Below are positions 2,168 to 48,493 of a stretch of DNA of 64,000 bases, piece by piece. The stretch is from positions 605,444-669,443 of the forward strand of contig CDMY01000243.1 in the NCBI GenBank assembly GCA_001179505.1. The letters are read 5' to 3'. How positions within the stretch are numbered: position 1 is the stretch's first letter; each line of letters begins with the position of its first letter. Below the pieces are notes generated by a model, which saw only the letters and a program-made list of their open reading frames with translations, was not told the origin of the DNA and ran no database searches. The position numbers were made by a program, and so were the translations under genes. This DNA is from Vitrella brassicaformis CCMP3155. Its lineage: Eukaryota; Protista; Chromerida.

Positions 2168-3689
2168 ATGACGATTCCCTTTGGTCTTCAGCAACGAATC
2201 ACGTTGATGCCATCTCAGCAGGGCGAGTCGGCAGGAGAGCCGCCATATGTCATTGCCATGCGGCTGTCGTGCGACCAATCAACCGCCCTCGCAGCCACGT
2301 CAAGCCCAACTCTCGTCCTCTTCTCGCCTCATACGCTCTCCGTCACCGGCCATCTGACGGGCCACACCGCGCCTGTCACTGACGCATGCTGCTTCCAGCA
2401 GAACGCCTCTTGTGTGGCCTCGGTGGGCAACGATGGCCACGCCCTGATTTTTGACATACGGAGCTCTGCTCAGCCTGCGGTGCGCTTCAAGGTGGCAGCA
2501 AAGACCTCCGAGGAGGTCAACAGCTGCACCGTGGGTGGAGGGGATGGGATGCTGGTGGCGTCGTGCGACAGCAAGGTGGTGGTCTATGACCTACGGGCGG
2601 GCAAGAAGCGGACGACGTACGAGTACCACTCTGACGTGGTCAACTGCGTCCGGTTCCATCCTTACCACAGCCACTGGCTGCTCTCCGCAGGTGTCTGTCT
2701 GACTGTCTGGCTGGCTGGCTGGATCCATCTCTTTGTGTGGGTGGGTGGGTGTGTTCAGGTGACGACACGAACATCTGTTTCTGCGACACCCAGCAGGACA
2801 ACACGAGCCAGGAGGGAGGGCCTGAAGACGAAGACTCAGCCATGTTCGGAGAAGAGTTCCTGCAGGTCGGCTCAGCGTACACCAACACGTGCCGACAGTC
2901 GGCAGACTGGCAGCCTGCCTGTTCGTGGTTTCCTGTCCTCCTCAGGTGCTTCCCAACGAGCTGAATGTTGCGTCGTTCAACCTGATCGGCAAAGAGGCCT
3001 CCCTCCTGTGTGCGGTGTCGACTACCAATGACGTGTCAATATTCGACCTGGACACGTGCAGCCGCCTGGCGCACTTCCAGTCGATAAGGGAGCATCCCCT
3101 GCTGCAGTATGAAGACTCAGGGGGCTACGTGGTCGACACCATGTGGGACGAAGTGACAGAGAGGCTGTTCATTCTGGCCGGTGGGCGGACACGCACGAGA
3201 GATCGAGGGAGAACGGCACATGCGGGCCGGTGTCCTTTTTGTAGGGTCGTCTCTGGGTCACTTGTTGCTGTTCCATGCCAACCTGACGACATCAACGCCG
3301 GCAGCGACGTTCGTCAACAGAGAGACCCAGGGGACGGGCCATCGAGCGGTCGTCAGGTATCCACAGGCTTCACACCAACACCATAGCAGGCTGTCGATTT
3401 GCCCGTCCTGTGTTGTTTGTAGGTGTGCGTTGTCGATACCCACCAGTGGCTCTGAGGCTGCCCGTCTGCTCACTGCTGGGGAGGACGGCCTCGTCTGCCA
3501 GTGGGCGCAGGTGCAACAAGCACCTATCGTCGAGCTCGATGCACATGTCATCCTCGTGTCTGTGTTGCGATGCAGGATTCGGTTGAGGGCGGTGCGTCAT
3601 GGTTCAAGTTGCACAATCACAAGGTGCCGAAACCGGGGACGAGCGAGAAGGGGGAGGCGCGCAGACAGCGACGGGCAGCGCCCTACTAG
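2168..3689 (+). CDS. WDR89: WD40-repeat protein, WDR89-like
   Basis: About 6 exons with canonical introns (~2691-2758, 2866-2945, 3181-3245, 3356-3422, 3511-3576). WD motifs include GHTAPVTDACC, VASVGNDGHALIFDIR, YHSDVVNCVRFHP...LLSAGDD, GHRAVVRC and LLTAGEDGLVCQW. The WDR89 assignment is recognised from memory, not from a search. Confidence 0.75.
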
Positions 3690-4929: not shown

Positions 4930-7480
4930 GTACCTAGGTCTTCTCACAAACAGCCTGCAGTGGGGAGACCCGACCCACCCACAATGCCCTTATGTGGTGC
5001 GAAGGGATCACTCAGCGAGGTCGACACAGCCCGCCGACTCGCCGATTGGCCGTCGTGATGCAGACTTCGCAGTTGGCTGTGCTGTTGGGCTGCACCTCGA
5101 ACAGAGACCGGCCGTCCTGGAACGACAGAGCCCTCTCACACGGGGCCAAACCGACAAAGCCACCTGCACACATTCAGCCATGGACAGAGCTGCACCAGTG
5201 TGTGCGTGTGTGTGCGTGTGTGTGTGTGTGTGTGGTCTGTGCCACCGACCCTGTTGGTGCTTGTTGTCCGTTAGGGTTGAAGCGGAAGAGCTCCCGCCCA
5301 TCGCCACTGGCGGCCGCCTCGAGAGACGAAGTTAGCGTCACTCTCGCGCCAGCCGTGTGGACGCGGCCGTGCTAGACCTGCAGGCACTGGTCCTCGCCGA
5401 TGGATGTGATGCCGCTGATGAGTGTGACTGTCGGGAGGCCATAGCCGATCAGGCGGACTGTGTTGATGCCGTACAAGTCGTGGTCGTGCCGACCCATCAC
5501 CACCTGCATGGCCTTGACGCGCCTCGGTGCGTCGAACAACAGATCCTGACATACCACACAAGACACAACACGACACACATGTCTCAACCGGCCTCTCCGT
5601 CTCTCACTCATTGGCTGCTTGCCTGCCTGGTCGAATGATCCCTCGGTCCGTTCCCACGTGCGCATGGGCAGCGCTATCTCGTACTCGCAGGTCGCCGGTC
5701 TCTCTGTGCGGCGTGGGGTCTTGTCCTCTCTCATTGGCGGCGGCAAACACGCGTCAGCCCAGCACTCAGGCGGATCCCGCCCGGTAGCTGACAATCGACA
5801 CGGCATCGAACGCACCTGGTAGACCCGCCCGATGACGGCCATGGTGTCGGGCGAAAGGATGGGGAAGTCCTCCACCCACTGAGTTGCTGATACCCAGACC
5901 CACCTCGCCGTGACTGTTGACCGTCACGTGGGAGTCCAAGCGGCCGGGGCTGGGCGGGGCTGACGCACCTGCCTTGGCGACTCAGTGCTGTGGAGAGACG
6001 GCCACGTCGAGAGGTCTTGACGGCGCACTTGCCCTCGAAGGTGAAGTACTCCAGCCGCAAACCCAGCATTTGGTCAGCCTGGACCCAAGACCGTCTTGAC
6101 GCCAATCCTGAGTGAGCGAGCAACGGACAACGCGCACACATATCCACACACACATATACAGACAGACATGGGTTGGATGCGTGGCTCTTTGCACTGCTCT
6201 GCACGTGTTGTGTTGTGTTGTGTTGTGTTGTGTTGTGTGTGGGTCCCCGGGGGTTTGGACGCTTACTCTTGAATGTATCTGGTCAGTAGCTTCCACACAC
6301 CCATGGCTTTGTCGATGGAATGGACGCCATTTCCAGCTCATGGTTCTCACGGATCTTATCCACACCAACGATGCAGCCGCTGCTGCGACGCCCACCACCT
6401 CTACCTCCTGCCCGCACTCTCGAGGGGCGCAGTAGGTCTGCACTGATGCCGCTGGTCGGAGGCCGAATGGTGCGCCGAGAGAGGGGAGGAGGTAGGGGGG
6501 CTGCTGAGTGTCTCCCTTGGTGGTAGAGCTGGCCTTGGTGTGTGGGCTGCTGCGACATGGCACGCGGCTCGGCATCTGCAGCGCGGAGACGGCACTCCTG
6601 CGGCCTGACACGAACCCACGACCACCTGCGACAGCCATGAGAACATGACAAGAAATGAGAGATGACCTCCGCCGTGTGTATGTGTGTATGTGTGGGTGGT
6701 CAGGTAAGGTACCTCTGTTCGATACTATGACGGCCCTCATCTCCCATCCAGATCAACACGCCGGACGTTGGGCTTCTCCCCGTCATCCACACCCACACCC
6801 ACAGCAACACCAACCTGGCCCTCGTCTCCATCCAGAACCAAGACCCCCAGCCATTCGCCCACCACCCACCGTACACAGCAGGCAGCCCTCCATTAGTCAT
6901 GAGCCCGCACATCCGCCCACTCACTCATAATTGCACCTCACGCCAGATCAGAGAGACAGAATAGCCTTGGCAGCCTTATCAGAAAGACAGATCAGAGAGA
7001 CAGAGAGAAAGAGAGACAGATCAGAGAGACAGAATGGTCGTGCAGTTGTGGCGGCACAGAACAGCAAATTCTGATACACAAATGGATGGAGACATGGATG
7101 GCATGTGCGGCATGTAGTCTGTGTATTATGCTGACGTACCGAGTGCGGGGTATTCCCATTCGATGATGATCCTGTCAAGCCTCGCCGGCTCCCCCAGGTC
7201 GATGTCGAATGTGACATGGGTGGGGGGCACGGGCGGCCCGCTCTCGTCAACAATGGGCAACACGGATTGATGAAAGGACCGACATGACGGCAAGGCGTCC
7301 CCAACTGCACCAAACACATTTGCACACACAGAGGATTGGACACAGAGATGACCATTTTCTACATCAGACGGCAAATTACCTGGGCCGCTCCCATTTCTTG
7401 ACGCGGGCGCGCAGAAAATGAGAGTAAAAGACCTCGAGATATAAAATGCAGACAGCAATTAGGCCACCAGGCCCTATCGA
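4930..7480 (-). pseudogene. Degenerate CCp/LAP-like (ricin-B plus discoidin/F5-8C) adhesive protein gene
   Basis: Exon SFDQ|DLLFDAPRRVKAMQVVMGRHDHDLYGINTVRLIGYGLPTVTLISGITSIGEDQCLQV*...GDGRELFRFNPNGQ (5548-5270) and PCERALSFQDGRSLFEVQPN (~5170-5090) resemble the ricin lobes of apicomplexan CCp1/CCp2. VTFDIDLGEPARLDRIIIEWEYPAL (~7230-7140) resembles a discoidin strand. There is an in-frame TAG at 5372-5374. Confidence 0.6.
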
Positions 7481-7741
7481 CAGAAACAAAGAGACATTTG
7501 ATATGAGGCCAAGGTAATGTCCCTTCTGTCTCATGTGCTTACCGCCTTTCGGTGGCCATGAGAGGGACTTGTGGCAGCTTGCGGTCACCAGCCTGACCCA
7601 CACCCACAGAAACACCAACCTGACTCTCGTCTCCATCCAGAACAAGACCCCCAGCCATCCGCCCACCACCCACCGTGCACAGCAGGCAGCCTTCCATTAG
7701 TCATGAGCCCGCACATCCGCCCACTCACTCATAATTGCACC
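6790..7741 (+). repeat. ~150-bp direct repeat pair (6790-6938 and 7597-7741)
   Basis: Both copies contain the near-identical block cacccacacccacag...ctcgtctccatccagaac...cattagtcatgagcccgcacatccgcccactcactcataattgcacc. Confidence 0.85.
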
Positions 7742-7797: not shown

Positions 7798-9770
7798 TTA
7801 TGCATCCCCCATCGGATATATGACCCCCGCCCACTCCTTCACCAGCAGCACCAGCACCTTCACCGCCGCCTCCGCCGACTCGGTCGTCCGCCGCTCGGCC
7901 CGCTCGTTCATCACCAGCTCCGCCACCACGATGGCCGCTGCGTCAGTCAGGCTGAAGCGCTCCGGCCTCTTCTGGAGCTCCAGCAAGCGCCTGACGACAC
8001 CCTCGACGTCCACGGCCTGCTGAGGTGGTGGTGCGAGGGAGGGGCGTCTTGGGTCTGTGGGGCTGTTGGGTCGGTGGGAGGGGGGAAGACCTGTTGGCGT
8101 CTTTCTTCGCGGATTTTGTGCAGACGGTTGATCTCCCGCCTGAGGTCAGCCAGCCGCTTATCCAGCAGCTGCAACTCGTCAATGCCCTCGTCACGCTTCT
8201 TCTCAGTGGCCCACACGGCGCGCCTCTGCCACTCGTCCGGGGGGATGGGGATGATGTTGGGATTCTCCGCCGTCTGCTGTTGGGTGCCGATGATGGCCTC
8301 GTCAAACGTGACGGCTGGCAGGTCCCTCTTGACGTCTGGCAGGATCTGGTGGGGGTACAGAAATGACAGAGCCATGCCGCCCACCGTCCACAGGTCGACG
8401 TCGGGCTGCCAGCCGGGGTAGCCCCAGTGTTTCTGCGCCCACTCGCCGACTGCCGTGGGATTGGTGGGGGGGCCGTTGGGTGTGCTCGAGGGGTCGATGA
8501 CGGCCTTGATGTGGGGCGGGGCGGAGGTGAGTGTGTTCATGATGTGTGTCTCGTACGGCACCGCCAGCGTCTTGCCCCCCCTCGTCACCAGACTGCCCCT
8601 CTCCTGCCCAGCGGCGTCGATAAAGGTGGGCACCGGCACCACCACCTGCCGACTGCCCCCGCGCACCACCGACGCGTTGACCTTGACGAATCCGACGAGG
8701 ATATTGTCGAAAGTCGCGTCGGTGGCGACGTAGGTGGAGCAGATCGGCAGCTCCTCGGCCGTCTGGACCGCGCTGGTGCTGGAGGTCATGCTGCCGACGG
8801 CCTTGGCAACACTAAACACAGGCACCTGAACCACACAAACACACACACATACAAACACAATACACCCATGGGTGAGCTCACTCTTTACGCCAATCCGACT
8901 GTCTGTCTCACCTTGTGGATTTGCCCTGTCTGTCTGTCTGTCTGTCTGTCTGTGTCTCTCACCTTATGCATTGCGTTGGTCTTCATCAGCAGGTCTATGA
9001 CGCCGAAAACGGCACCCACCTGCTTCTTCCCCATCTTCTTCATTATGGTCTTCCTGATCTCCTTGCCGTTGGCCATCTGGATGCCCGCCTCCTGCGCCGC
9101 TGTCGGCTGAGCTCCGCTGTCCAGCAGACGCAGCGCCGACACCTCGCCAGGCGGATACAGCTGGACCCGCAGCGCAAGAAAGCTGCCGAGGGGCTGGCGT
9201 CGGGCGTCGTACTGGCCGTCGATGTTGCCAACGACAGCGACGCCGTCCTGGCCGGGCTGCTGCTTGGGCGGCGCCTCCCCCTCCCCACTCGCAATGTACA
9301 GCGAGTAGATCGGTCCCCCCATGGTGTAGAGCCCCTGCGCCTGCCGATACTCGCCCGCGAAGGCCTCCTCTAGGGCCTCGCGGACGGCGGACGGCACCGC
9401 GCCCTTCTTGCGGGCGAGCTCGGGGAGGGCAGGGGGCGGCTGGGCGGTGGGGGGACGGCTCTTCTCCGGATGCTGAGTGGTCAGCAGGTATAGGAATGCG
9501 GGCTCGACACTCCTGGACAACCTGCAACCAAACGAGCAATCCACACAGTGAGTTACAGGGCAGACCGAATGAGATGTGCAGGACGATGTGGCACTCTCTG
9601 TGTGTGGCATTACATACCTGCTGTGGTCGTCCTGGTCGCCTCGAGGGGCCGACGCGCCCTCCCCACGACAGCTATCAGGTGCCTCCTCGGCAGGGCCAGG
9701 GGGACTCTCAAAACACGGGGCAGCGGCTACATTCTCGGCCTCCGTCTCCTCCTCTCTGCCGGGGAGTAAT
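7798..9770 (-). pseudogene. Kinase-like family copy A (both lobes present, one frameshift)
   Basis: Exons ~9770-9618, ~9522-8963 (ends ...MKTNAMHK at GTGAG donor) and 8825-7798 (starts VPVFSVAK after TTCAG). A 1-nt deletion near 8024 relative to copy B (CACCACCTCAGC vs CACCACCCCCAGC) splits ORFs 7947-8858 and 7798-8013. Confidence 0.75.
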
Positions 9771-10189
9771 TCTGAATGAGTCACGCACACATCACAAAAC
9801 AGACAGACGAACAGGCAGGACGATTTGATGAGCGCTTCTTCATTTGGTCGGTCGGCAGGCATGTGGTTCGCTTACAGTTGTCGGGTTTCTGATCTGTGTT
9901 GAGGTTGCCGACCTTGTGCAACTCCTCGACGCTAGAAATGAAAGTACAAGACCTCGAGATATAAAATGCAGGCAGCAATAAGGCCACCAGGCCCTATCGA
10001 CAGAAACAAAGAGACACATGATATGAGGCCAAGGTAATGTCCCTTCTGTCTCATGTGCTTACCGCGCCCGCCGGGGAAATGGAGGAGGGGGGATCCATCC
10101 ACCACACCCAGCACCCAGCAGCACACCACATGGGCTCGGGGGCCAGGATAAACAACCCGAACCCCAAGGCCATTGCTTCAACAGCAGCA

Positions 10190-11390
10190 CTAGCACCTTG
10201 ACCGCCGCCGCCGCCGACTCGGTCGTTGCCGCTCGGCCCGCTCGTGCATCACCAGCTCCGCCACCACGATGGCCGCCGCGTCAGTCAGGCTGAAGCTCCC
10301 CGACTTCTTCTGGAGCTCCAGCAACGGCGTGACGACACCCTCGACGTCCACGGCCTGCTGGGGGTGGTGGTGCGAGGGAGGGGCGTCTTGGGTCTGTGGG
10401 GCTGTTGGGCTGATGGGAGGGGGGGAGACGTGTTGGTGTCTGTCGGGATTGATTTCGTGCAGATGGTTGATCGACCGCCTTAGGGTATCCAGCCGCCTAT
10501 CCAGCAGCTGCAACTCGTCGATGCCCTCCTCGTCAGGCTTCCTTTCGGTGGCCCACACGGCGCGCCTCTGCCACTGGTCCGGGGGGATGGGGATGATGTT
10601 GGGGTGCTCCGCCGTCTGCTGTTGGGTGCCGATGACGGCCTCGTCAAACGTGACGGCTGGCAGGTCCCTCTTGACGTCGGGCAGGATCTGGTGGGGGTAC
10701 AGAAATGACAGAGCCGTGCCGCCCACCGTCCACAGGTCGACGTCGGGCTGCCAGCCGGGGTAGCCCCAGTGTTTCTGCGCCCACTCGCCGACTGCCGTGG
10801 GAGTGGTGGGGGGGCCGTTGGGTGTGCTCGAGGGGTCGATGACGGCCTTGATGTGGGGCGGGGCGGAGGTGAGTGTGTTCATGATGTGTGTCTCGTACGG
10901 CACCGCCAGCGTGTTGCCCCCCCTCGTCACCAGACTGCCCCTCTCCTGCCCAGCGGCGTCGATCACGCCATCTTGACCCTGCTGCTGATTGAGCACTGCA
11001 GGGGACACCACAGCACACACAAAATGTACCGCAGAGCTGAACATTGACCTCAACAGGCCTATAGTTCTTCCCTACCTTTCTGATACGGCTCGAAACACTT
11101 TTGGCACTTCAGCTGCGCGCCGTTATCAAATGAGAAGTCGACAAATATAAAATGTAGGCAGAGATCGGACCTGCACATCGACACAAAGAGACACGATCAG
11201 AGTGGTCGCTGCGCTGATGTCTCAGTTTGTTTCCTCACGCACACATTCGTCCGCCCCGCGTCACCAAACTGCCCCTCTCCTGCCCGGCGGCATCGACAAA
11301 GGTGGGCACCGGCACCACCACCTGCCGACTGCCCCCGCGCACCACCGACGCGTTGACCTTGACAAATCCGACGAGGATATTGTCGGTGCC
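10190..11390 (-). pseudogene. Kinase-like family copy B (C-lobe only, interrupted by a ~285-bp insert)
   Basis: DNILVGF...DAAGQERGSLVTRGG (11390-11250), then a foreign insert (11249-10964), then IDAAGQERG...WQPDVDLWTVGG...AELVMHER (10963-10190). The C-terminus is frameshifted. Confidence 0.75.
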
Positions 11391-12120
11391 ACGCTCATGC
11401 ACCCCGTCAACCACCACGTGCGTCTAGCGGCTGTGGTCGTCGCCCGTCGCCGAGGCACTCGCACTTCCCTGGCTCTCCTTCATCGCACCCACGATGCGGC
11501 GCAACAAGATGCCTGCATGCAGATCCAGAAGCAACACGCAGTGGTGTGTGTCGGTGCGGGAGTGAGTGAGTGAGTGAGTGTGGCCCATTCCCTTTGCCTA
11601 CCGCTGGTGCAGAAGAGGATTTTGGTGTGTTTTGATGCGTTGATGTTTTCCTGTCCGATCTGCCACCCCACCAGGCCGCCCACCTGGTGCTGGCCGTCCT
11701 TGGACAAACCCCGCGTCATGCACTCGTACGCGACACGCCTGACATACACATGGATGGATGCTGGCTTTTGCTCGTGTCTTGTGTGTGTGTCGGTGTGGGT
11801 GCGCACTTTGCGACGCTTGTGGCTGCGAGTCGGCGTGGCTGCGACACGATAATGCGGACGTCACGGCTCGTCTGCAGGGCCTCACGCAAAATGAACTGGG
11901 GAAGCTGCACACACTCACACAGGGAGGGAGGGAGGGAGAGGAGAGACGGACCAATACAGTGGGTTGGTGTTTGTGTTGTGGGTTTGGGTGTGGTTGACGG
12001 ACCTGTGTGGTTTTGCCGCTGCCAGTGGCGCCGTGCAGGACGATGCACTGGTGGTCTCGCAGTGCATCGATGAACGTCTCGTGGTGCGCGTGGACCGGCA
12101 GAATGGGAAGCCCAAACTCG
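11390..12120 (-). pseudogene. DEAH/RHA RNA helicase fragment (DHX36/DHX57/TDRD9-like), copy 1
   Basis: Spliced exons 12120-12003, 11904-11807, 11738-11602 and 11512-11390 give LPVHAHHETFIDALRDHQCIVLHGATGSGKTTQLPQFIL...SQPRRLAATSVAKRVAYE...ILFCTSGILLRRI...*THVVVDGVHER, i.e. motifs I, Ia, Ib and II only. There is a TAG at 11424-11426 and DEVH is changed to DGVH. Confidence 0.85.
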
Positions 12121-13225: not shown

Positions 13226-13329
13226 CTGTGACACAACGCACACGACACACCACACATACCACATCACATCCGTCCACCCTGTCCGTCAGTCCGATGGCAT
13301 TGCGTCGTGATGGCCTTCTGCACCAGCGG

Positions 13330-14525
13330 CCATCCTCGTGAGACCGATGAGAATGTTGTCATACGTGGCGTCGGTGGCCACATACGTCGAAGTCGGCGGC
13401 AGGGACTCGGTTGTTTGGACGGCGCTGGTTCCTGACTGCATGGCCTTGAGGGCGTCGGCTGCGTTAAACATTCTCACCTGAACAACACAACCACTCACAC
13501 ACAAGTGCACCATGTCGATCTGTTTCGTGTCTCACCTTATGCATCGCTGAAAGGGCTTAGAAGCCAGGATACAGGCGCACCTGCACCAAACACACACAGA
13601 CAGATCACAAAACTCACTATCACAAAAGTCATTCGCCGCTCCTGCTCCTGCCTTACAGAATGGATGTCGTTGACTGGACAGTGCAGAAGCATGAGAACAG
13701 AGATTCTTCGGGATATAAAATGTAGGCAACGATACATCTGCAGCAGACACAGAAACATCCGCACTCATTGCCGACTTTTTCCATTCGTTCTGCTTCATTT
13801 ACCCTCTTCCTTTCCACCTCCTTGGCGCCGTTCATGACCGATCAGGTTGGCGGGGCAACTTGAGAAACGACAACAACAGGCGATCAGCCGGACAGCCTGA
13901 CAGACACAAGGGTATATCCACCACTCGTGTACTCACACACACATGGATGGACTGATGTGCATTCGCTTACATTCACCCCCTCCCTGCTGCATCTGCTGCC
14001 GCGGAACCTCCTCGCCCTCGCCACTCGCGACGAACAGCGAATAGATGGGCCCGCCCTGCGTCAGCAGCCCCTCTGCCCCACCATACCCGCCGCCGAATGC
14101 CTGCTCGATGGCCGGCCTCAGCAGGGGCGGCACCACGCCCTTCTTGATGGTGATCTCGGGCGGCGGCGGTGGGTTCTTGGGGGCAGCATGGTGCCGTGAC
14201 AGCAAATACAACATGGTGGGCTCCAGACGGCTCTCGGGCGCGTCAATGACCTTGCGGACGACGGGCAAGGTGAGCGGCCCATTCTGCAACACCGGGAAGG
14301 TCACCGTGGGCCGCTTGCTGGCGATGCCACGGGGTTCGTCGTCCTTGCCGTCCAGCGTCCACCGAGCCGCACCGGTGGAGAGCGGCACTACTGTGGGTGG
14401 TGGTGTTGGTGGTCCTGCTGGTGCTGTTGGCGGGGCGGGGGCGTGTGCGCCCTCACTGGCCTCCTGGCACAGCGGTGCTGCTGCTGCAAGTGGGCTGGTG
14501 GGTGCGGCATGGTGGCATGACGACC
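13330..14525 (-). pseudogene. Kinase-like family copy C (diverged, fragmented)
   Basis: AARWTLDGKDDEPRGIASKRPTVTFPVLQNGPLTLPVVRKVI...GLLTQGGPIYSLFVASG (14400-13970), AMHK donor (~13540) and exon VRMFNAADAL...STYVATDATYDNILIG (13477-13340), which abuts the helicase fragment. Confidence 0.7.
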
Positions 14526-14643: not shown

Positions 14644-15189
14644 ATGTGTGCGTGTCGTGTACCCACCTGTCGTGTGGGCTGCTGTCCCCCTCCTCCCCTC
14701 CCTCTCCCTCACGGGCGGCCTCTATCTCCCTCTCCTGTCCACTGGGCAACACTGATTGATGAAAGGACCGCCACACAGAAAGCACACCAGAGGTCATTCA
14801 TCTCATCACCGTAGTCGCCCATTTCATCCGCCTTGCTGTCGTGAGTGCTTTGGCTCACCCTCACTAAGTGTCGCCGGCGCGCCGCGCCCCTCCTCGACGT
14901 CGGCCTCTCCTCTCCCCTCCTCCCGGCTGTCCCTCTTTCCCGGCTCGTCCCCAACTGCACCAAACACATTTGCACACACAGAGCCATAGGCACAGAGATC
15001 ACCCTTTTCTACATCAGACCGCAAATTACCTGGTCGCTTGCATTTCTTGACGCGGGCGCGCATGAAATGGGAGTAAAAGACCTCGAGATATAAAATGCAG
15101 GCAGCAATTAGGCCACCAGGCCCTATCGACAGAAACAAAGAGACATATCATTGTGGGTAAGTTAATGTGCCTTCTGTCTCATGTTCTTA

Positions 15190-17450
15190 TCGCACTCTGG
15201 TGACCGCCCTTGGCCCCCTCCATCGGTGTCTTGATGGTCTTCTGCACCACAGGCACTGTGAGGGGGGAAGACGTGCTGGCGTCTGTCGCGGCGGATTTCG
15301 TGCTGGCGTCTGTCGCGACTGCCTTAGGGTATCCAGCCGCCTATCCAGCAGCTGCAACTCGTCGATGCCCTCCTCGTCAGGCTTCCTCTCAGTGGCCCAC
15401 ACGGCGCGCCTCGGCCACTGGTCCGAGGGGATGGGGCTGCTGTTGGGATTCTCCGCCGTCTGCTGTTGGGTGCCGATGACGGTCTCGTCAAAGGTGACGG
15501 CTGGCAGGTCCTGCTTGACGTCCGGCAGGATCTGGTGGCAATACAGAAATGACAGTGCCGTGCCGCCCACCGTCCACAGGTCGACGTCGGGCTGCCAGCC
15601 GGGGTAGCCCCAGTGCTTCTGCGCCCACTCGCCGACTGCCGCGGGGGTGCTGGGGGGGCCGTTGCGTGTGCGCGAGGGGTCGATGACGGCCTTGATGTGG
15701 GGCGGGGCGGAGGTGAGTGTGTTCATGATGTGTGTCTCGTACGGCACCGCCAGCGTCTTGCCCCCCCTTGTCACCAGACTGCCCCTCTCCTGCCCAGCGG
15801 CGTCGATAACGCCATCTTGACCCTGCTGCTTATTAAGCACTGCAGGAGACACCAAAGCACACACAAAATGTACCGCAGAGCTGAACTTTGACCTCAACAG
15901 GCTATAGTTCTTCGCTACCTTTCTGATACTGCTCGAAACACTTTGCCACTTCAGCTGCGCGCCGTTATCAAATGAGAAGTCGACAAATATAAAATGTAGG
16001 CAGAGATCGGACCTGCACATCAACACAAAGAGACACGATCACAGTGGTCGCTGTGCTGATGTCTCAGTTGGTTTCCTCACGCACACATTCGTCCGCCCCG
16101 CGTCACCAAACTGCCCCTCTCCTGCCCGGCGGCATCGATAAAGGTGGGCACCGGCACCACCACCTGCCGACTGCCCCCGCGCACCACCGACGCGTTGGCC
16201 TTGACAAATCCGACAAGGATATTGTCGAAGGTCGTGTGGTTGCGACGTACGTGGAGCGGGGCGGCAGCTCCTCGGCCGTCTGGACCGCGCTGGTGCTGGG
16301 GCGCTGGCGACGGCCTTGGCAACACTAAGCACAGGCACCTGAACCACACAAACACACACACAAACACACAGAATACATTCATTGGTGAGCTCACCCTTTC
16401 CATCCCTCTGCCCTGTCTGTCTGTCTGTCCGTCTGTCCCTTTGTGTCTCTCACCTTATGCATTGCGTTGGTCTTCATCAGCAGGTCTATGACTTGGCGGT
16501 GACGGCAAATACGGCACCGACCTGCCAGTCGTCCTCCTCCTTGAAGTTGCTGCTCCCCACCAGCCTTTTCATCTTCTTCCTGATCTGCCACCCGTGGGCA
16601 ATCTCCTTCATTTTGGTGCGGTTGATCCGCTTGCCGTTGGCCATCTGGATGCCCGCCTCCTGCGCCGCTGTCGGCTGAGCTCCGCTGTCCAGCAGACGCA
16701 GCGCCGACCCCTCGCCAGGCGGATACAGCAGGACCCGCAGCGCAAGAAAGCTGCCGAGGGGCTGGCGTCGGGCGTCGCTCTGGCGGTCGATGTTGCCAAC
16801 GACAGCGACGCCGTCCTGGCCGGGCTGCTGCTTGGGCGGCGCCTCCCCCTCCCCACTCGCAATGAACAGCGAGTAGATCGGTCCCCCCATGGTGTAGAGC
16901 CCCTACGCCTGCCGATACATACTCGCCCGCGAAGGCCTCGTCTAGGGCCTCCCGGACGGCGGGCGGCACCGCGCCCTTCTTGCGGGCGAGCTTGGCGAGG
17001 GCAGGTGGCGGCTGGGCGGTGGGGGTGCGGCTCTTCTCGGGATGCTGAGTGGTCAGCAGGTAGAGGAATGCGGGCTCGAGGCGCTCCTTTTGCATCCTGA
17101 TGGTCTTCTGCACCACAGGCAGTGTGAGGGGGCCGTTGCGGAGCCTCTGGAAAGAGACAGCGGCGCGTTGGATGGCGACGCCATGAGCCGATGCTGTCCC
17201 CCTCTCCAAAGTCCACTCGGCCGCCTTGTGGAGTGTTGGTGCTGGTGCTTCTGGTGCCGTTGGTGCCTCTGGTGCTGCTGATGCTTCTGGTGCTGCTGGT
17301 GGGGCGGTGGCATATGTGCTGTCGGCATCGTCCTCCTCGGGCAGTGGCGCCGTGGGTGGGGCTGGGATGGGTGGTCCGGGCGCCAACACGCCCTCCTCCC
17401 TCTCCTCAACACACTTGGACACTCTGCATCCAAACGAGGCGTCCACACAG
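15190..17450 (-). pseudogene. Kinase-like family copy D (frameshifted, with the same ~280-bp insert as copy B)
   Basis: AAEWTLERG...NGPLTLPVVQK...EAFAGEY, a 4-nt ATAC duplication at ~16917 causing a frameshift, then GGPIYSL...GSFLALRV...MHK, exon 16336-16090, insert 16089-15810, and the C-lobe 15809-15300. Confidence 0.75.
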
Positions 17451-17499
17451 ACACAGACAGACCAAATGAGATGGTTAATGAGATGGAAGTCTCTCTGCG

Positions 17500-19330
17500 T
17501 GTGGCCTTACCCGTTGTTGGTGTCATGGCCGCCTCCAGGTGCAGACACGCCCTCCTTCTGCTCCCTCTCCTCCTCAACACTCCTGGACAACCTGCAATCA
17601 AACGAGCAATTCACACAGTGAGCGACAGGGCAGACCGAATGAGATGTGCAGGACGATGTGGCACTCTCTGTGTGTGGCATTACATACCTGCTGTGGTCGT
17701 CCTGGTCTCCTCGAGGCGCCGACGCGCCCGCCTCACGACAGCTTTCAGGTGCCTCCTCGGCAGGGCCAGGGGGACTCTCAAAACAGGCGGCTACATTCTC
17801 GGCCTCCGTTTCCTCCTCTCTGCCGGTCGGCTGGTCGCCCTCTCCACTCTGCTGCTGCTGGCTACTCAGATCGGGGAGCTCTGGTGCTGCTGCTGGCGTG
17901 GGGGCGGCTTTGTTGGCCTTCTCCTCTCTCTCCCCCTCCTCTGTCACGCCGGCCGGGCCGTGGCTGTTCTCATCTCTGGCGGGCTGCAATGCGGCGGCGG
18001 TAGCAGCCTTGTGGTGGTGGCTGGTGGGCTGCTGGCTCGATAAATCATGCACATGCACATGGATCCCTTCCTCTCCCGGCTGAAGACCGCCATTAAGCGG
18101 CCCAGCTCGAACGATAGCAGCAGGCCCCGGTCCGCTGGGGTGGATAGGTGGCCGTGGCCGTGGTGCGGCGGACGTCGTGCGGGGAACCTGCTGGTATTGC
18201 TGCGGTCCCATCAGTGGTGGGGTGGCCGTGGCCGTGTAGATGGGCCGCAGCGGGGCCGGGCGCGGATACGCAGCCACAAACCCCAAATGGGGGGGTGGGG
18301 GTGGGGAAGGGGATGGGGATGGGGGTGGGATGCAGCAGGAGGGCCGTCGCGCTGCTGCAGAGCCTCGGCGAGGTGCCTGTCAGCTGGTCGTCGGCCGAGG
18401 GACCGCGAAGGCCTCCTCTAGGGCCTCCCGGACGGCGGGCGGCACCGCGCCCTTCTTGTGGGCGAGCTTGGCGAGGTCATGGGGCGGCTGGGCGGTGGGG
18501 GGGCGGCTCTCTTCGGGACGCTGGGTGGTGAGGAGATAGAGGAAGGCGGGCTCGAGTCGCTCCTTTTGCATCCTGATGGTCTTCTGCACCACTGGCAGTG
18601 TGAGGGGGCCGTTGCGGAGCGTCGGGAAGGAGACAGCGGCGCGTTCGATGGCGACGCCATGAGCCGACGCTGTCCCCCTCTCCAAAGTCCACTCGGCCGC
18701 CTTGTGGAGAGTCGGTGCGGTGGCTTCTGGTGCCGTTGGTGCCTCTGGTGCGGGTGAGGCTTCTGGTGCTGCTGGTGGGGCGGTGGCAGCTGTGTTGTCG
18801 TTGTCCCCCTCAGGCAATGCGGCTGGGTGTGGGGCTGGGATGGGTGGTGTGGGGGCTGGCGTGGGTGAGTCGGCTTGGCCCTGCACCTCAAAGGACGATC
18901 TGATATCGGCAATTCACGCAGACACAGACAGAACAGAATGGAAGTCCTCTGAGTGTGTCATTATTGTACCCATTTCGATCGTCACGGGCACGCCCCCCTC
19001 CCTCTCGTCAACACTATCGGACACTCTGCGACCAAACGAGGCGTCCACACAGACACAGACAGACCAAATGAGATGGGTAATAAGATGGAAGTCTCTCTGC
19101 GTGTGGCCTTACCCGTTGTTGGTGTCATGGCCGCCTGCGGGCATCGACACGCCCTCTTCACGCACACTAACACCTCCCTCCCCGGCAGCCGTGGGGGCAG
19201 TTGCGATGGCGGCGGCACTGCCTCTTCCCTCCTCTCCCTCTCCCTCTGTCGTGGCGCCCGGCGCTGTCGGCGTCGGCGCGTCTGTGGCAGCCTCGTGGTG
19301 GTGGCTGGTGGGCTGCTCCCTCGGTAGAAC
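17500..19330 (-). pseudogene. Kinase-like family N-terminal modules and truncated N-lobe (copy E)
   Basis: 18886-18405 repeats AAEWTLERG...EEAF and is joined at ~18405 to the Pro/His-rich N-terminal module (MGFVAA...RAGPLNGGLQPGEEGIHVHVHD, homologous to 44360-44700). The DQDDHSR exon/intron at 17700-17590 and the GHDTNNG exon at 17510 and 19110 are also duplicated. Confidence 0.7.
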
Positions 19331-33714: not shown

Positions 33715-36700
33715 TCATTCACACCGTCCCCGCCCGCCCCATCGACTCACTCGGTTGTTGCGCTTCTGTCGGGGCGGTGCAGCGCCGCCGCGGCGCTCGT
33801 CACGATAGTCCCAAGGACGCATCACGTCTGAGGGGGCACACACAAGGCAACACATACATACAGCACACCCACACCGCCCGTGTGTCGTATGTCTGTGTCT
33901 GTGCCTCTGTGTGGTGTGGTGTGGTGGTTGCTGACCCTGTCCAGCGCCCATCCCAGGAACCACAGCAGGGTCGTTGTCACGGAAGGCCCGCATGTTACCG
34001 CCGTAGCCCCCACCACCGCCCCCGCCACCACCACGCCCGTCACGGCCGTCGTACTCGTCCTCATCATCTAGGACAACACGGAACACTGAAACTGGTGGCA
34101 ATCAATGTCGGCTCGCTGTCTGCCCTGCCTTTGTGGTGGTGGGGGTGCTTACGCCGTCCGCCGTATTGGTCGCGGTGGTCACGGTTGTAGTCACGGTCAC
34201 GGTCCTGACGCACACCGACACACACGCAGGCACAGATCTGCATGTATGTCGAGACGGCATCATCTCATCCATCTGGCTTACGTCGTTGTATTGGTAGTTG
34301 TTGTTGCGCCCCCCTGTGCGTTCGACGTCCTCCTCGCGAGGCCGGTAGTTGTTGTTGTTGCGCCCCCCGCCGTCACGACGGCCGCCACCACCACCACCTC
34401 CACGACGGTCAGGCGTGTCGTACTCATCCTCATACGCTGAGTTGATAAAGAATGCCATCCACACGCAATCGATCCGCCGCTCCATGTGTGTGAGGGCATC
34501 CATCTCTCTGTGTGTTGCTTTCCACTTACTGTCTCGGCCTCGGTCGCAGTCGCGGCTGTCTCGCTGCTGTCGTCGGCTGTCTCGGGGCGCGCTGCCGGAG
34601 CCGGGGGGCGGGGCGGTTGAGGGTAGGTACTGCATGAGCTGGGCCAGCTGCTGCTGCATCTGCTGCTGCATCTGCTGCTGCATCTGTGCCTGCTGCTGCA
34701 TCCGCTGCATCTCCTCCTGGTGCTTGCGATTGTTCTCGGCCAGCTTCTCGCGGTGCATGGCGGCCTGGGCCTCGCTCTGCTGCTGCATATACTCCATCAT
34801 CGCTGACGTGAGACAATGGGTGAGAGGGGGAGGGAGGGAGGGAGGGGCGCGCACACACAGACAGAGAGACACACCCACATGGACGGATGGAGAGATGGCT
34901 GTGTTGCGGGGGATGTGTGTGTATGTGTATGTGTGTGTGTGCGCGCACCCTTGAAGTCGGAAGCCTGTGGCTGGGGGCTGACGCCTGGTGGAACGGAATG
35001 GAATGGAAGGGATGGAGGAAGAGGCAACAAGACAACAGAGGAGGCACGCGTAAATCGATTCTCTGTCTTCCCTCTCAGTCGTGTGTGTTTGGTGGGGTGG
35101 GTCGTACCGTTGGTCGATGCAGCCGCAGCAGCAGCGCCACCTCCAGTGTTGGTGTTGCCGCCCCATCCTCCGCCCCCGACAGACGCCTCGTTGCCCCACC
35201 CGCCGCCAGAGGATGATGCCGCACCTGCGCCGTAGCCACCTCCACTAGGAGAGGTACCGCCCCAACCTCCTCCACCACCGCCTCCAGCACCAGACGAGTT
35301 GCCTCCAGCGGCAGCGGCAGGTGAACCCGACTCCCCAGGAGACGGCAGCAACTCCCCAGCCTGAAGTAATTGAGATTCAAATCAACGTCACGTCAGCTGC
35401 ACTGACTCGACTCTCTCAGTCACTCACATGGCTGCTGGGACCACCTGAACCCGACGCCCCACCACGGAGTCTCGCCACGCGTTCATTGTAAAACTTCAGA
35501 CGTGTTGGGCCGTCCGGGCGGCTCAGCTGCTCCAGAAAGTACATCAGTCTGTCCTTGAACTGGTTGAAGAGGTTGAAGCGTTCCTCGAGAGGCAGCACCT
35601 GGGTGGCCCTGTCTGCATCTTTGTGGAAGTCGGTGCACAGCGCTGCCGACCCCTGCAGGTCCCCATCCGTCTTCCACCGGCGGCGGAGGGCCTCTTGCTG
35701 TGCGTTCACGGCAGGCCGCCACACGAAGTTGGTCACTCTCCCGAGGTTGAACTCGTTCAGGGGAGCCAGGATGTCGGAGATGTGGCGCCTGATATGGGCC
35801 GGCGTATCCGGGTGACTGGCGTAGTTGGCGAAACCCTCCTCCGTCTGAACCAAGACAAACACGCGGCCAAATAAAGCACCGCTCCTTCGAGTGGCTGACT
35901 ATGTGCGTGAGGGCCTACGTGACGTGTTCGATACATACCAGGTTCAGCCGACTAGTGATCATCTCGCGGAAGCTACGATACTCGGGATCGGCAGCACATC
36001 CAAACAGACAAACTGATAGGCAGACAGACGACCAGATAGGCAGACAGACAGACAGACATCCAAAAGTGAGCATGACTCGTGTTCATGCTTCTTACATCGG
36101 CAAGCGGGGTCGCTAGGGTCGAAGGTATCCCTGTACTCGGCCGGCACTGTCTCAGGTGTGTGCACCACCAGCCTGATCCAACCCAGCCTCCCATCCAGCA
36201 GCAGCTCCTCTCCCGCCCCCCGTGTCAGCTCCATGCCCCACGACAGGCGATGGCCGAAGAGGCCATATTGGCGCATGCTCGCCGGTCGGCTGTCGATTTC
36301 CGCCTTGGTGCCCGCGCGCCCCACATCGCGCTCGTCCAGCTGGAGGGGCAGCCTGCCCACATCGCGCTCGTCCAGCTGGAAGGGCAGCCGGACGGACTCG
36401 AGTTTCTTGGCAAGCTGCAGCAGCGGCACACTCCCTGACCAGTCGCCCCCCACCTCTATCAGGTGCCGCAGACGGATCAGCCGAAACACGCGACGGCGAC
36501 TGGTGGACTGACGCAGCGGCTGGTAGTCGATGATGTTCTCCAGTCCGTTGCTCTTGATGAGGCCGTCGATGGCCGACGTCACGGCGGTCTCGACTGCACT
36601 GCTGCCGGCGTGTGACGTGCTGGCCATGGTGTTGTTGACCTGGGTGAGAGTGGTGGTCTCATCGCCCTCTGGACCGATCCATCCGGCGAGTGTGTGTTGG

Positions 36701-43809: not shown

Positions 43810-46800
43810 ATGGCCACAAATACTGTGCGAGCTGGATCGCCTCCCTTCGCGAAGAGAAAGAGAGTAGAAATGGCGCCGCCCAACGTCGCCTGGCATCCAG
43901 CACCGATGCCCTGTCATCCTCATTATTGCTATCCGCCTGGACGGCCGGCACTTCCGCTCATCAACCCGCCGGCGTCCTATGGCTACCACGAGGGGCTGTC
44001 GCGACACTACTATCCCGTCCCCGCCACCGCGCCCGACGCCCCTGAGGGCCAGCAAACTGAGATGTGCGCCCCCTGTGAGGCCGCGGTCAACGCCGCCCGT
44101 GCTATGGACCAATGGTTCCGAGAGCAACTCGCGAAGATCGGCGAGTCGCTGCGGCAGTGCGGGTGCTGCCTCGTCAGCGGACCAGAGAGCCAAGAGGCTC
44201 AGCGGCCGAGCGGTCCCTCGGCCGACGACCAGCTGACAGGCACCTCGCCGACCACACCTCGCTGGGGGAACGTTGCACCCCCCCGGGCTCTGCAGCAGCG
44301 CGACGGCCCTCCTGCTGCATCCCACCCCCACCCCCTTCCCCTTCCCCACCCCCACCATATGGGGTTTGTGGCTGCGCACTCGCCCCCGGCCCCGCTGCGG
44401 CCCATCTACCCGGCCACGGCCACCCCACCACTGATGGGACTGCAGCACCAGCAGGCTCCCCGCACGACGTCCGCCGCACCACGGCCACGGCCACCTATCC
44501 ACCCCAGCGGACCGGGGCGGCCTGCTGTAATCGTTCGTGCTGGGCCGCTTAACGGCGGTCTTCAGCCGGGAGAGGGAGGGGTACATGTGCATGTGCATGA
44601 TTCATCCAGCCAGCAGCCCACCAGCCACCACCACGAGGCTGCTCCAGCCATGCCGCCCACTACAGAAGACGACCACCACGGGCAGGCCAGCAAGACAGAG
44701 GAGGGAGAGAGAGAGGAGAAGGCCAACACAGCCGCCCCCANNNNNNNNNNNNNNNNNNNNNNNNNNNNNNNNNNNNNNNNNNNNNNNNNNNNNNNNNNNN
44801 NNNNNNNNNNNNNNNNNNNNNNNNNNNNNNNNNNNNNNNNNNNNNNNNNNNNNNNNNNNNNNNNNNNNNNNNNNNNNNNNNNNNNNNNNNNNNNNNNNNN
44901 NNNNNNNNNNNNNNNNNNNNNNNNNNNNNNNNNNNNNNNNNNNNNNNNNNNNNNNNNNNNNNNNNNNNNNNNNNNNNNNNNNNNNNNNNNNNNNNNNNNN
45001 NNNNNNNNNNNNNNNNNNNNNNNNNNNNNNNNNNNNNNNNGGCTGGGCGGCCACGGACCCGCTGGTCTGTTCAACACCGATAGATTATCCACACAAAGCC
45101 ACACAAAGGCGCCCTGACAGCCCATCGTCACCACCAAAGTCAATTGAGATCTCCGCCCCCTCAGTGCATTTGAGTGATATTTGTCCTCTGAACGGTCTGT
45201 TTGTGCTCATCAAGTGTGCCCTCAAAGCCAAGGGGCGGGGAAATGGCCACAAATACTGTGCGAGCTGGATCGCCTCCCTTCGCGAAGAGAAAGAGAGTAG
45301 AAATGGCGCCGCCTTACGTCGCCTGGCATCCTGCACCGATGCCCTGTCATCAACATTATTACTATCCGCCTGGACGGCCGGCACTTCCGCTCCTCAACCC
45401 GCCGGCGTCCTATGGCTACCACGAGGGGCTGTCGCGGCACTACTATCCCGTCCCCGCCACCACGCCCGACGCCCCTGAGGGCCAGCAAACTGAGATGTGC
45501 GCCCCCTGTGAGGCTGTGGTCAACGCCGCCCGTGCTATGGAACAATGGTTGCAGAAGCAACTCGCGAGGATCGGCGAGTCGCTGCGGCAGTGCGGGTGCT
45601 GCCTTGTCAGCGGACCAGAGAGCCAAGAGGCTCAGCGGCCGAGCGATCCCTCGGCCGACGACCAGCTGACAGGCACCTCGCCGACCACACCTCACTGGGG
45701 GAACGTTGCACACCCCCGGGCTCTGCAGCAGCGCGACGGCCCTCCTGCTGCATCCCACCCCCATCCCCACCCCCTTCCCCACCCCCACCATTTGGGGTTT
45801 GTGGCTGCGCACTCGCGCCGGCCCCGCTGCGGCCCATCTACACGGCCACGGCCACCCCACCACTGATGGGACTGCAGCACCAGCAGGCTCCCCGCACGAC
45901 GTCCGCCGCACCACGGCCACGGCCACCTATCCACCCCAGCGGACCGGGGCGGCCTGCTGTAATCGTTCGTGCTGGGCCGCTTAACGGCGGTCTTCAGCCG
46001 GGAGAGGGAGGGGTACATGTGCATGTGCATGATTCATCCAGCCAGCAGCCCACCAGCCACCACCACGAGGCTGCTCCAGCCATGCCGCCCACTACAGAAG
46101 ACGACCACCACGGGCAGGCCAGCAAGACAGAGGAGGGAGAGAGAGAGGAGAAGGCCAACACAGCCGCCCCCATGCCATCAGCAGCACCAGAGCTCCCCGA
46201 GCTGAGTAGCCAGCACCAGCAGCAGAGTGGAGAGGGCGACGAGCCGGCCAGTAGAGAGGAGGAGACGGAGGCCGAGAATGTAGCATTTGCTGCCCCGTGT
46301 TTTGAGAGTGCCCCTCGCCCTGCCGAGGAGGCACACGATAGTGTGCAGGAGGAGGGCGTGTCTGCGCCCGACTGTGACCAGGACGACCACAGCAGGTATG
46401 TCAGGCCACACACAGAGAGTGCCACATCGTCCTGCACATCTCATTTGGTCTGCCCTGTCGCTCACTGTGTGGACTGCTCGTTTGGTCGCAGGGCGTCCAT
46501 CTGTGTNNNNNNNNNNNNNNNNNNNNNNNNNNNNNNNNNNNNNNNNNNNNNNNNNNNNNNNNNNNNNNNNNNNNNNNNNNNNNNNNNNNNNNNNNNNNNN
46601 NNNNNNNNNNNNNNNNNNNNNNNNNNNNNNNNNNNNNNNNNNNNNNNNNNNNNNNNNNNNNNNNNNNNNNNNNNNNNNNNNNNNNNNNNNNNNNNNNNNN
46701 NNNNNNNNNNNNNNNNNNNNNNNNNNNNNNNNNNNNNNNNNNNNNNNNNNNNNNNNNNNNNNNNNNNNNNNNNNNNNNNNNNNNNNNNNNNNNNNNNNNN

Positions 46801-48493
46801 NNNNNNCACCATTTGGGGTTTGTGGCTGCGCACTCGCGCCCGTCCCCGCTGCGGCCAATCTACACGGCCACGGCCACCCCACCACTGATGGGACTGCAGC
46901 ACCAGCAGGCTCCCCGCACGACGTCCGCCGCACCACGGCCACGGCCACCTATCCACCCCTGCGGACCGGGGCCTGCCGTTATCGTTCGTGCTGGGCCGCT
47001 TAACGGCGGTCTTCAGCCGGGAGAGGGAGGGGTTCGTGTGCATGTGCATGATTCATCCAGCCAGCAGCCCACCAGCCACCACCACGAGGCTGCTCCAGCC
47101 ATGCCGCCCACTACAGAAGACGACCACCACGGGCAGGCCAGCAAGACAGAGGAGGGAGAGAGAGAGGAGAAGGCCAACACAGCCGCCCCCACGGCACCAG
47201 CAGCACCAGAGCTCCCCGAACTGAGTAGCCAGCACCAGCAGCAGAGTGGAGAGGGCGACGAGCCGGCCAGTAGAGAGGAGGAGACGGAGGCCGAGAATGT
47301 AGCATTTGCTGCCCCGTGTTTTGAGAGTGCCCCTCGCCCTGCCGAGGAGGCACACGATAGTGTGCAGGAGGAGGGCGTGTCTGCGCCCGACTGTGACCAG
47401 GACGACCACAGCAGGTATGTCAGGCCACACACAGAGAGTGCCACATCGTCCTGCACATCTCATTTGGTCTGCCCTGTCGCTCACTGTGTGGATTGCTCGT
47501 TTGGTCGCAGGGCGTCCATCTGTGTTGAGGAGAGGGAGCAGGACGAGGGCGTGTCTGCGCCCGGAGGCGCCGAGGACGACCATAGCAGGTATGCAATGCC
47601 AGGGGGAGTGACACATATCATTTACCCCATGGCGCACCGCATCTGTCATCTGTTTGTCTGCCTGTTGGCTGTTTCCCTTCATCCTCAGGTCGTTGATGAG
47701 TAATGTGATTAACGAAGCCGCCGACGCCCCACACCCCCCCGCGCCGCCAACACCAGCACCGCCCACAGCACCGCCGCCCATGGGCGCGGCTGAGTGGACC
47801 CTCGACGACAAGTACAAGAAGCCGAGCGGGGTTGCCAGCAACCGCGACGAAGTGACCTTCCCCGTCCTGCTCAATGGTTCTATGAGCCTGCCGGTCGTGC
47901 GGAAGGTCATCAAGTCGCCAGCGGATCTCGTGGAGCCCGCCTTCTTGTACTTGTTGTCGAAGGACCACCTCAAGGCGAGCAGCCCCCCCGCAGACACGCC
48001 TGCCGACACCGCCACCCTGGCCCAACAGAAGGGCGTCGTGCCCCCCTTCATCCAGCCGGCCATCATGGAGGCCTTCAGGGGCGAGTACCGGCGAGCCCAG
48101 GGGCTGTTGACGCTGGGGGGCCCGGTCTACTCCCTGTTTATCTGCAGTGGAGACGGCGAAGAGGAGCTGCCACAGCAGCAGCAGGTGCAGCGGGGGGAGG
48201 AGGAAGTGGTGGTGGTGCGCGACCTTCACAACGCCACCGACGGCCGTCTGCGTCCGCACGGCAGCTTCTTGGCGCTGCGCGTCCTGCGCTTCCCGCCGGG
48301 CGAGGCATCTGTCCTCGACCGGCTGGGAGCTGGCGCGAGTGCCGCCAGAGAGACTGCCGGGATACCGATGGCCAACGGCCGGCGCATCAGGGAGACGATG
48401 GTGCAGCAGCTGGGTGTGAGTGAGGAGGAGTGGGAGGTGGGCGCCGTGTTTTGCGTCATCGACCTCCTCATGAAAACGATGGCTATGCATAAG
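43810..48493 (+). CDS. Kinase-like family copy F: tandemly repeated N-terminal exon(s) plus intact N-lobe exons; C-lobe exon presumably in the 48571-48870 gap
   Basis: MATNTVRAGSPPFAKRKRVEM... occurs at 43810 and ~45243. Exons 46813-47414, 47511-47588 and 47689-48493 splice in frame (DHSR|ASI, DHSR|SLM, ends MAMHK|GTGAG). Gaps at 44741-45040 and 46507-46806 interrupt the model. Confidence 0.65.
44741..45040. other. Assembly gap (300 N)
   Basis: Run of N between near-duplicate blocks. Confidence 1.
46507..46806. other. Assembly gap (300 N)
   Basis: Run of N between near-duplicate blocks. Confidence 1.

Follow-up and report, generated by a model that had tools for sequence, protein, structure and literature searches.

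A gene family restricted to Vitrella brassicaformis with a likely diverged kinase C-lobe in its last exon, and its defective copy at positions 7798–9862

The minus-strand locus at positions 7798–9862 of a 64-kb stretch of the Vitrella brassicaformis CCMP3155 genome (the whole 64,000 nucleotides are called the window here) raises the question of whether this alga carries a private family of genes for kinase-like proteins and, if so, whether the copy found at this locus could make one. The original prediction, made from the letters of the window, held that the locus belongs to an unannotated, lineage-specific, multi-copy family with a cryptic protein kinase fold. It was built on a series of short motifs, all of which we located on the minus strand where they had been placed. 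We refer to this locus as copy A, and we used its three open reading frame (ORF) pieces, together with the full-length paralog P0003, as tblastn queries. Family pieces were found at seven places in the window, with DNA identity between copies of 67% to 95%, as follows.

7798–9862, minus strand: copy A, a defective paralog (from tblastn and comparison with copy D)
10170–11423, minus strand: copy B, part of exon 3 only, with its own 1-base frameshift in the tail
13325–14316, minus strand: copy C, a diverged fragment limited to the beginnings of exons 2 and 3
15257–17983, minus strand: copy D, all three exons, of which exon 2 is frameshifted and interrupted by a stop; more indels
18404–18736, minus strand: copy E, a 5′ fragment of exon 2, annotated within CEL96702.1 (P0002)
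44650–48496, plus strand: copy F region, a repeated N-terminal exon and one intact exon 2 (47840–48496)
62359–63999, minus strand: copy G, an exon 2 interrupted by an in-frame TGA, then the intron and an intact exon 3 and tail

No copy in the 64-kb window is intact, every one of them being either a fragment or interrupted by stops or frameshifts. The copy F region has no exon 3 downstream of its exon 2, and copy G reads TGA at 63538–63540, where copy F has TGG. The annotation of copy G, CEL96717.1 (P0001), begins only at an internal Met, and its DATYDN motif lies at 63247–63264. The description of the family as unannotated is correct for copy A but not for other members, which are annotated as hypothetical proteins.

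Several features of the surrounding DNA bear on how the copies are related. The N-terminal exon of copy F (MPPTTEDDHHGQASKTEEGEREEK...) occurs three times in tandem, at 44650–44739 (a fragment), 46082–46507, and 47101–47529, and is followed by the single exon 2. Copies B and D have in common an insertion of ~290 bp in exon 3 (10964–11250 and 15811–16094, respectively), flanked by a duplicated IDAAGQERGSLVTRGG-coding segment (IDAAG..TRGG), and because they share this insertion, we regard these two copies as sister duplicates. Copies A, B, and D are each followed, at a distance of a few hundred bases, by a 130–250-bp repeat, 90–95% identical (7296–7545, 9936–10065, and 14946–15193), and since it is absent elsewhere in the window and from the two other loci, it is the 3′ flank of the duplicated unit. 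A mobile element was rejected as an explanation because the repeat is found only beside these three copies, in that flanking position, and ten neighboring long ORFs that we scanned contained no transposon domains. Among unrelated neighbors, an ORF at 2168–3031 (plus strand) has WD40 repeats (Pfam WD40, 38 bits), and one at 34102–35199 (minus strand) has a weak TFIIA alpha/beta-like Pfam match (E 4e-6, below cut-off) that is probably due to low-complexity sequence.

Copy A itself consists of the following parts.

9618–9762, minus strand: exon 1 remnant, acidic and of low complexity
8963–9521, minus strand: exon 2 remnant (front half), with GLYTMGGPIYSLY, GSFLALRV, AGIQMANGKEI, and VIDLLMKTNAMHK
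8826–8962, minus strand: intron of 137 nt, GT..AG, phase 0, between AMHK and VPVF
8028–8825, minus strand: exon 3 body (kinase C-lobe-like), with STYVATDATFDNILV, IDAAG, AVPYET, YPGWQPDVDLWTVGG, and WQRRAV
8020–8027, minus strand: 1-base deletion relative to copy B, shifting the frame ahead of the conserved tail
7798–8019, minus strand: C-terminal tail, helical and conserved (..SLTDAAAIVVAELVM..RRT..AVKVLVLLVKEWAGVIYP), with the stop; its frame differs from that of the exon body

On the minus strand, GSFLALRV is at 9164–9187, with its Arg codon at 9167–9169, and the exon 3 motifs are at 8703–8720 (D-x4-N, as DATFDN), 8607–8618 (DAAG), and 8376–8402 (YPGWQPDVDLWTVGG, DVDLWTVGG). The exon 3 body continues past WQRRAV as a coiled-coil/proline-rich linker. 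Copy A is truncated at its 5′ end, its homology to copy D beginning at 9762 and running downstream, so that the start of exon 1 is missing. It also has an internal deletion of 493 bp relative to copy D, whose positions 17080–17572, corresponding to the end of the intron and ~100 codons of exon 2, are not found in copy A, and a 1-base frameshift ahead of the tail, at ~8021–8025. As assembled, copy A at 7798–9862 cannot encode the full protein.

Could copy A and its neighbors nevertheless be functional genes, with their lesions being short-read assembly errors in repeats or small introns that have not been recognized? The contig of one public DNA run has an extra base at position 8021 along with an adjacent substitution, and the contigs of two other public DNA runs end at this site (breaks at 8021–8041), so the frameshift of copy A, taken alone, could be an assembly or paralog mix-up. 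Furthermore, a 71-nt GT..AG interval at 8020–8090 would, if removed, restore the frame of copy A. However, copies B and G, P0004, and P0003 read through this same interval in frame, and the 5′ truncation and the 493-bp deletion are large structural differences. The change in copy G is a clean TGG to TGA, copy D carries several independent lesions, and no sequence from copy A or copy G is found in the one RNA-labelled public run, the remaining public runs being genomic DNA. We therefore consider it very unlikely that these copies are functional.

The only intact member that we found is CEM29384.1 (P0003, 798 aa), encoded on another contig of the same organism.

1953–2345, 2435–3220, and 3331–4545 in contig CDMY01000675 (L001): the three exons of the CEM29384.1 gene

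This gene has a phase-0 GT..AG intron of 110 nt between GMHN and VAIF, and the GT..AG intron of copy A agrees with it in both position and phase, from which we conclude that these are real, related, intron-bearing genes. Thus, the intron at 8826–8962 in the spliced product that had been proposed for the locus is real, but in order to read that product out of copy A, one must ignore the frameshift near 8021–8025. More copies of the family were found on CDMY01000675 and on a second contig, CDMY01000759 (L122). The latter holds copy H (5353–7388, minus strand), which is unannotated and near full length, with a frameshift just past the alphaF-like helix and an odd in-frame insert ahead of YPGWQP, as well as P0004, a C-terminal half copy. 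P0006 is a second, partial copy on CDMY01000675. Two annotated models, P0005 and P0007, look rearranged or chimeric: in CEM29392.1, the N-terminal part of the family is fused straight to the post-APE part with the core skipped, and in CEL93603.1, an unrelated N-terminus is fused to the middle of the family. Either the copies themselves have been rearranged or separate genes were merged during annotation.

Vitrella brassicaformis CCMP3155 was the only source of relatives in searches that covered ~15 billion public proteins. Exon 3, compared exhaustively by phmmer with 1.84 billion representatives, gave three matches, and a word-indexed profile search of a 5.8-billion-protein collection gave four, all of them from Vitrella. 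Two of the family's database relatives sit on the window's own 669-kb contig, and the literature that we searched contained no description of the family. With members at seven places in the window and on two other contigs, and with relatives in Vitrella only, the proposal of a lineage-specific multi-copy family is borne out, and judging from gene structure and these searches, this is a paralogous, intron-bearing family of three exons that is private to Vitrella brassicaformis.

Whether the proteins are kinase-like is a harder question, since conventional searches do not recognize them as such. HMMER scans against Pfam, by which the kinase assignment was to be checked according to the original prediction, gave it no support, as the exons of copy A, P0001, P0003–P0007, and other pieces were all blank for Pkinase, even at E 10. 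Searches of the PDB by phmmer and with profiles returned no kinase, and the matches that they did return (TbRSP63, AlkB, and an enterochelin-binding protein) were dismissed as low-complexity or chance. A home-made kinase HMM, run against single family members with hmmsearch, gave weak matches to the alphaF region only. Standard hhalign runs likewise aligned only the alphaF block, over 21–23 columns, with a probability of 29–40% and P of 3e-4 to 6e-4. The blank Pfam and PDB searches and the short match in standard hhalign speak for an orphan family with no kinase fold at all, in which the kinase-like motifs, chiefly a D-x-W-S/T-x-G helix and a D-x4-N-ILV strand, would have arisen by convergence or chance.

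To set against these results, we have profile–profile alignments with kinase domains that were retrieved through DNA patterns for HRDxKPxNI, a set of 101 bacterial Hanks-type and 30 viral domains. When the family profile was aligned by hhalign with 101–131 of these domains, P was 1.5e-4 to 4e-4 and the probability 35–51%, with collinear alignment over 224–271 columns. The Arg of LALRV was placed on the beta3 Lys, VIDLL on beta5 and the hinge, S-T-x-V-A-T-D-x4-N-I-L-V on G-I-I-H-R-D-L-K-P-E-N-I-L, and D-x-W-T-V-G on alphaF. Probabilities across the domain did not exceed 56%, and block shuffles showed that the bulk of the score came from the alphaF block, so we tested the segments one by one. 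AlphaF alone was placed at its proper template position with P 1.5e-5 and a probability of 80%, a match confirmed by the standard hhalign runs. The segment from the hinge to the catalytic loop also found its proper place (P 0.0097), and the tail matched best, although weakly (P 0.12), at the helices that close the kinase domain. The front half and the IDAAG segment failed to land at their proper places.

As controls, the block shuffles were uninformative because the blocks retain the alphaF motif, and we used alternative frames and unrelated ORFs instead. Exon 3 alone scored 36.2 against the kinase profile in hhalign, with P 1.1e-4. The frame controls, which were the same aligned DNA in five other frames with equal depth and relatedness, scored 7–13 in ten alignments of other reading frames of the exon 2 and exon 3 DNA, and none of 87 unrelated ORFs from the window exceeded 18.4. 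For exon 2 in its true frame the score was 17.0, with the match at an incorrect position. Three separate segments align with kinase profiles where they should and in the expected sequence, and alternative frames of the same DNA score far lower, both of which argue against an orphan fold.

The language-model searches point the same way for the back half of the protein. An ESM feature search with residues 200–798 of P0003 returned kinase families only (score 0.94, 187–195 shared features), as did one with exon 3 of copy A (0.89), and the automatic annotation in UniRef names a C-terminal fragment of the family, CEM29386.1, 'Protein kinase domain-containing protein'. Exon 2 of copy A had Ribosomal_L1 as its best match (0.87, with low recognition), and non-kinase neighbors of the front half are a further point for the orphan reading. 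Predicted structures are of low confidence: AlphaFold2 models of P0003 residues 176–798 (from a 16-row alignment) and of P0001 (from a 12-row alignment) had pLDDT of 49.8 and 45.9, both unreliable. The first of these low-confidence models gave only noise in Foldseek searches against the PDB and in a wide VIA-align search, and the lack of a kinase match above noise among the AlphaFold models also favors an orphan fold. For the low-confidence Atlas model of P0003, the best structural neighbor was a Pkinase cluster (TM 0.40, against 0.26 for the runner-up). In the low-confidence P0001 model, the catalytic Asp terminates one strand, the Asn begins another, a third stops just ahead of IDAAG, and helices follow at xYE and at D.W..G, an order that fits a kinase C-lobe.

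Taking these results together, we think it likely that the last exon is homologous to the kinase C-lobe, and a full bilobed kinase domain in the family is plausible; an orphan family with no kinase fold we judge unlikely. The cryptic protein kinase fold of the original prediction thus survives in part, since exon 3 resembles a C-lobe both in its ordered profile matches and in the ESM searches, but the proposed N-lobe has no profile or language-model signal.

If the C-lobe reading is right, the state of its catalytic residues becomes the next question. We aligned the most diverged members (P0003 and copies A, G, and H; 38–57% identity), and 116 of the 467 columns (25%) were invariant, including the D and N of TD-x4-N-ILV, IDAAG in full, the Glu in xYE, and YPGWQP..D.W. 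By our own calculation, the five named residues would all be invariant by chance with a probability of ~0.25^5, or roughly 1e-3. The exact D-x4-N spacing that had been pointed out is confirmed, TD-x4-N-ILV being invariant in all four members and set by hhalign on HRDLKPENI; the His and Arg of HRD are missing, however, the motif being [A/S]TD. IDAAG is invariant and in the low-confidence model follows a predicted strand, as DFG does, and hhalign does not set it on DFG. The replacement of the ATP-binding Lys by Arg is seen in copies A, D, F, and G and in P0003, but copy H has Lys (LALKV), and Lys at this beta3-like position is confined to that one frameshifted copy.

Two other proposed kinase elements do not hold up. 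The four-way alignment has no Glu conserved across the family in the candidate alphaC region. As for the glycine-rich loop, the GGPxY motif put forward for it lies ~50 residues ahead of LALRV, whereas GxGxxG lies ~20 residues ahead of beta3 in kinases, and the segment that hhalign does set on this loop has no conserved Gly. The HRD His and the DFG Phe are regulatory-spine residues of kinases, and at these positions the family has Ala/Ser and Ala, respectively. The pseudokinase flavor suggested for the family fits with Arg for the beta3 Lys, [A/S]TD for HRD, and DAAG for DFG. Because of the Arg at beta3 in all copies but one, the small spine residues, and the lack of a conserved Gly-rich loop or alphaC Glu, the intact protein is most likely a pseudokinase-type binding or scaffold protein, one that may still bind nucleotide or metal, and most likely no canonical phosphotransferase.

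From these comparisons, a layout of the protein can be proposed. An acidic or proline-rich low-complexity N-terminus would be followed by the conserved front half, a diverged C-lobe, and a helical tail that would sit behind a coiled-coil or acidic insert. Within the putative C-lobe, [A/S]TD-x4-N-ILV would be the catalytic loop, IDAAG would stand at DFG, xYE at APE, and D-x-W-x-x-G would be alphaF, so that the catalytic Asp, the Asn, and the DFG Asp, which serve in metal and phosphate handling, would have been kept.

The retention of these residues could also mean that the proteins are active atypical kinases or nucleotide-transferring enzymes such as AMPylases, which would work with the Asp/Asn/Asp triad and an Arg or Lys at beta3 and without a Gly-rich loop, the copies being a case of adaptive diversification. 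Such activity would agree with the invariance of the catalytic Asp, Asn, and DFG Asp equivalents at 38–57% identity, with the Lys at beta3 in one copy, and with purifying selection, as dN/dS between the old lineages is 0.3–0.65. But the copy with the Lys is frameshifted, the spine His and Phe have become Ala/Ser and Ala, neither the alphaC Glu nor the Gly-rich loop is conserved, and the majority of copies are broken, with copies A and G absent from the RNA-labelled run. We regard active enzymes of this sort as rather unlikely. The more specific idea, that intact members form a new kinase-like branch in which the Gly-rich loop, the His/Arg of HRD, and the Phe of DFG have disappeared and the triad and Arg/Lys serve a non-canonical transfer such as AMPylation, in a birth-and-death cluster of a chromerid alga, seems to us improbable.

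Between recent duplicates, dN/dS is mostly ~0.5–1.2, with two short pairs lower (0.26 and 0.42); a value of 10.8 for exon 2 of copies A and D was discarded as an artefact of the frameshifted end of copy D. This pattern, together with the lower values between old lineages, is that of birth-and-death evolution, in which parts of the genes would be duplicated locally, in tandem or in inverted orientation, and the duplicates would then decay. Its members are most likely fast-evolving, largely decaying, pseudokinase-like proteins. Overall, we favor the reading that the back half of the family is a diverged kinase C-lobe, that copies are born and decay through partial duplication, that the product of an intact gene is of the pseudokinase type, and that copy A is a defective member, and we consider this combination reasonably probable.

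Among known domains, the closest comparison is with the eukaryotic protein kinase (ePK) domain (Pfam PF00069, PROSITE PS50011). The family shares with it the order and spacing of D-x4-N and then ILV, of an xDxxG that carries the Asp and follows a beta hairpin, of a helix with xxE, and of a D-x-W-[ST]-x-G alphaF, and in the profile–profile match only its back half is collinear with the domain. Unlike the ePK domain, the family escapes Pfam at every threshold, conserves neither a Gly-rich loop nor an alphaC Glu, and has [A/S]TD in place of HRD and DAAG in place of DFG. It also has long inserts between the Asn and DAAG, between xYE and alphaF, and before the tail, and its front half is unrecognizable as an N-lobe. 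Arg in place of the beta3 Lys is also found in KSR-type pseudokinases. We take the family to work like the ePK domain, from which it probably descends, although it departs from that domain in several defining features.

The family had also been likened to the ROPK and FIKK expansions of Apicomplexa. ROPK of coccidia (including the pseudokinase ROP5) and FIKK of Plasmodium resemble it in being lineage-restricted within alveolates, multi-copy, and fast-evolving, with degraded catalytic motifs. However, ROPK and FIKK are recognizable kinases that carry signal peptides or export signals and are used by parasites against host cells. The Vitrella proteins have no Pkinase match, the N-terminus of CEM29384.1 (MPPTREEDHH...) is acidic and hydrophilic with no hydrophobic signal by inspection, Vitrella is a free-living alga, and the family is small and consists mostly of pseudogenes or fragments. 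With neither a signal peptide nor a parasitic context, the analogy is weak, and it breaks down over secretion, recognition by kinase profiles, and biology. The Toxoplasma WNG (with-no-Gly-loop) kinases offer another alveolate example of a kinase-like domain that lacks a glycine-rich loop. Unlike the Vitrella family, WNG kinases are secreted proteins that retain the beta3 Lys and HRD and that kinase profiles detect.

The original prediction had ranked this family as the best candidate for an undescribed system in the window. With the flagged copy and all other window copies truncated or broken, we would call it a modest curiosity, and what is new about it is a strongly diverged relative of a known kinase domain rather than a new system. 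Its practical value is limited because the family is tiny and mostly broken, copies A and G are absent from the RNA-labelled run, and there is no link to a known pathway. If the kinase-like reading is true, the family would represent a lineage-private branch of the kinase superfamily that has diverged beyond the reach of Pfam, and it would do so in the closest photosynthetic relatives of Apicomplexa. It would then serve as one more example of the erosion of kinase domains into pseudokinases and of the way in which gene copies are made and discarded in chromerid genomes through local partial duplication.
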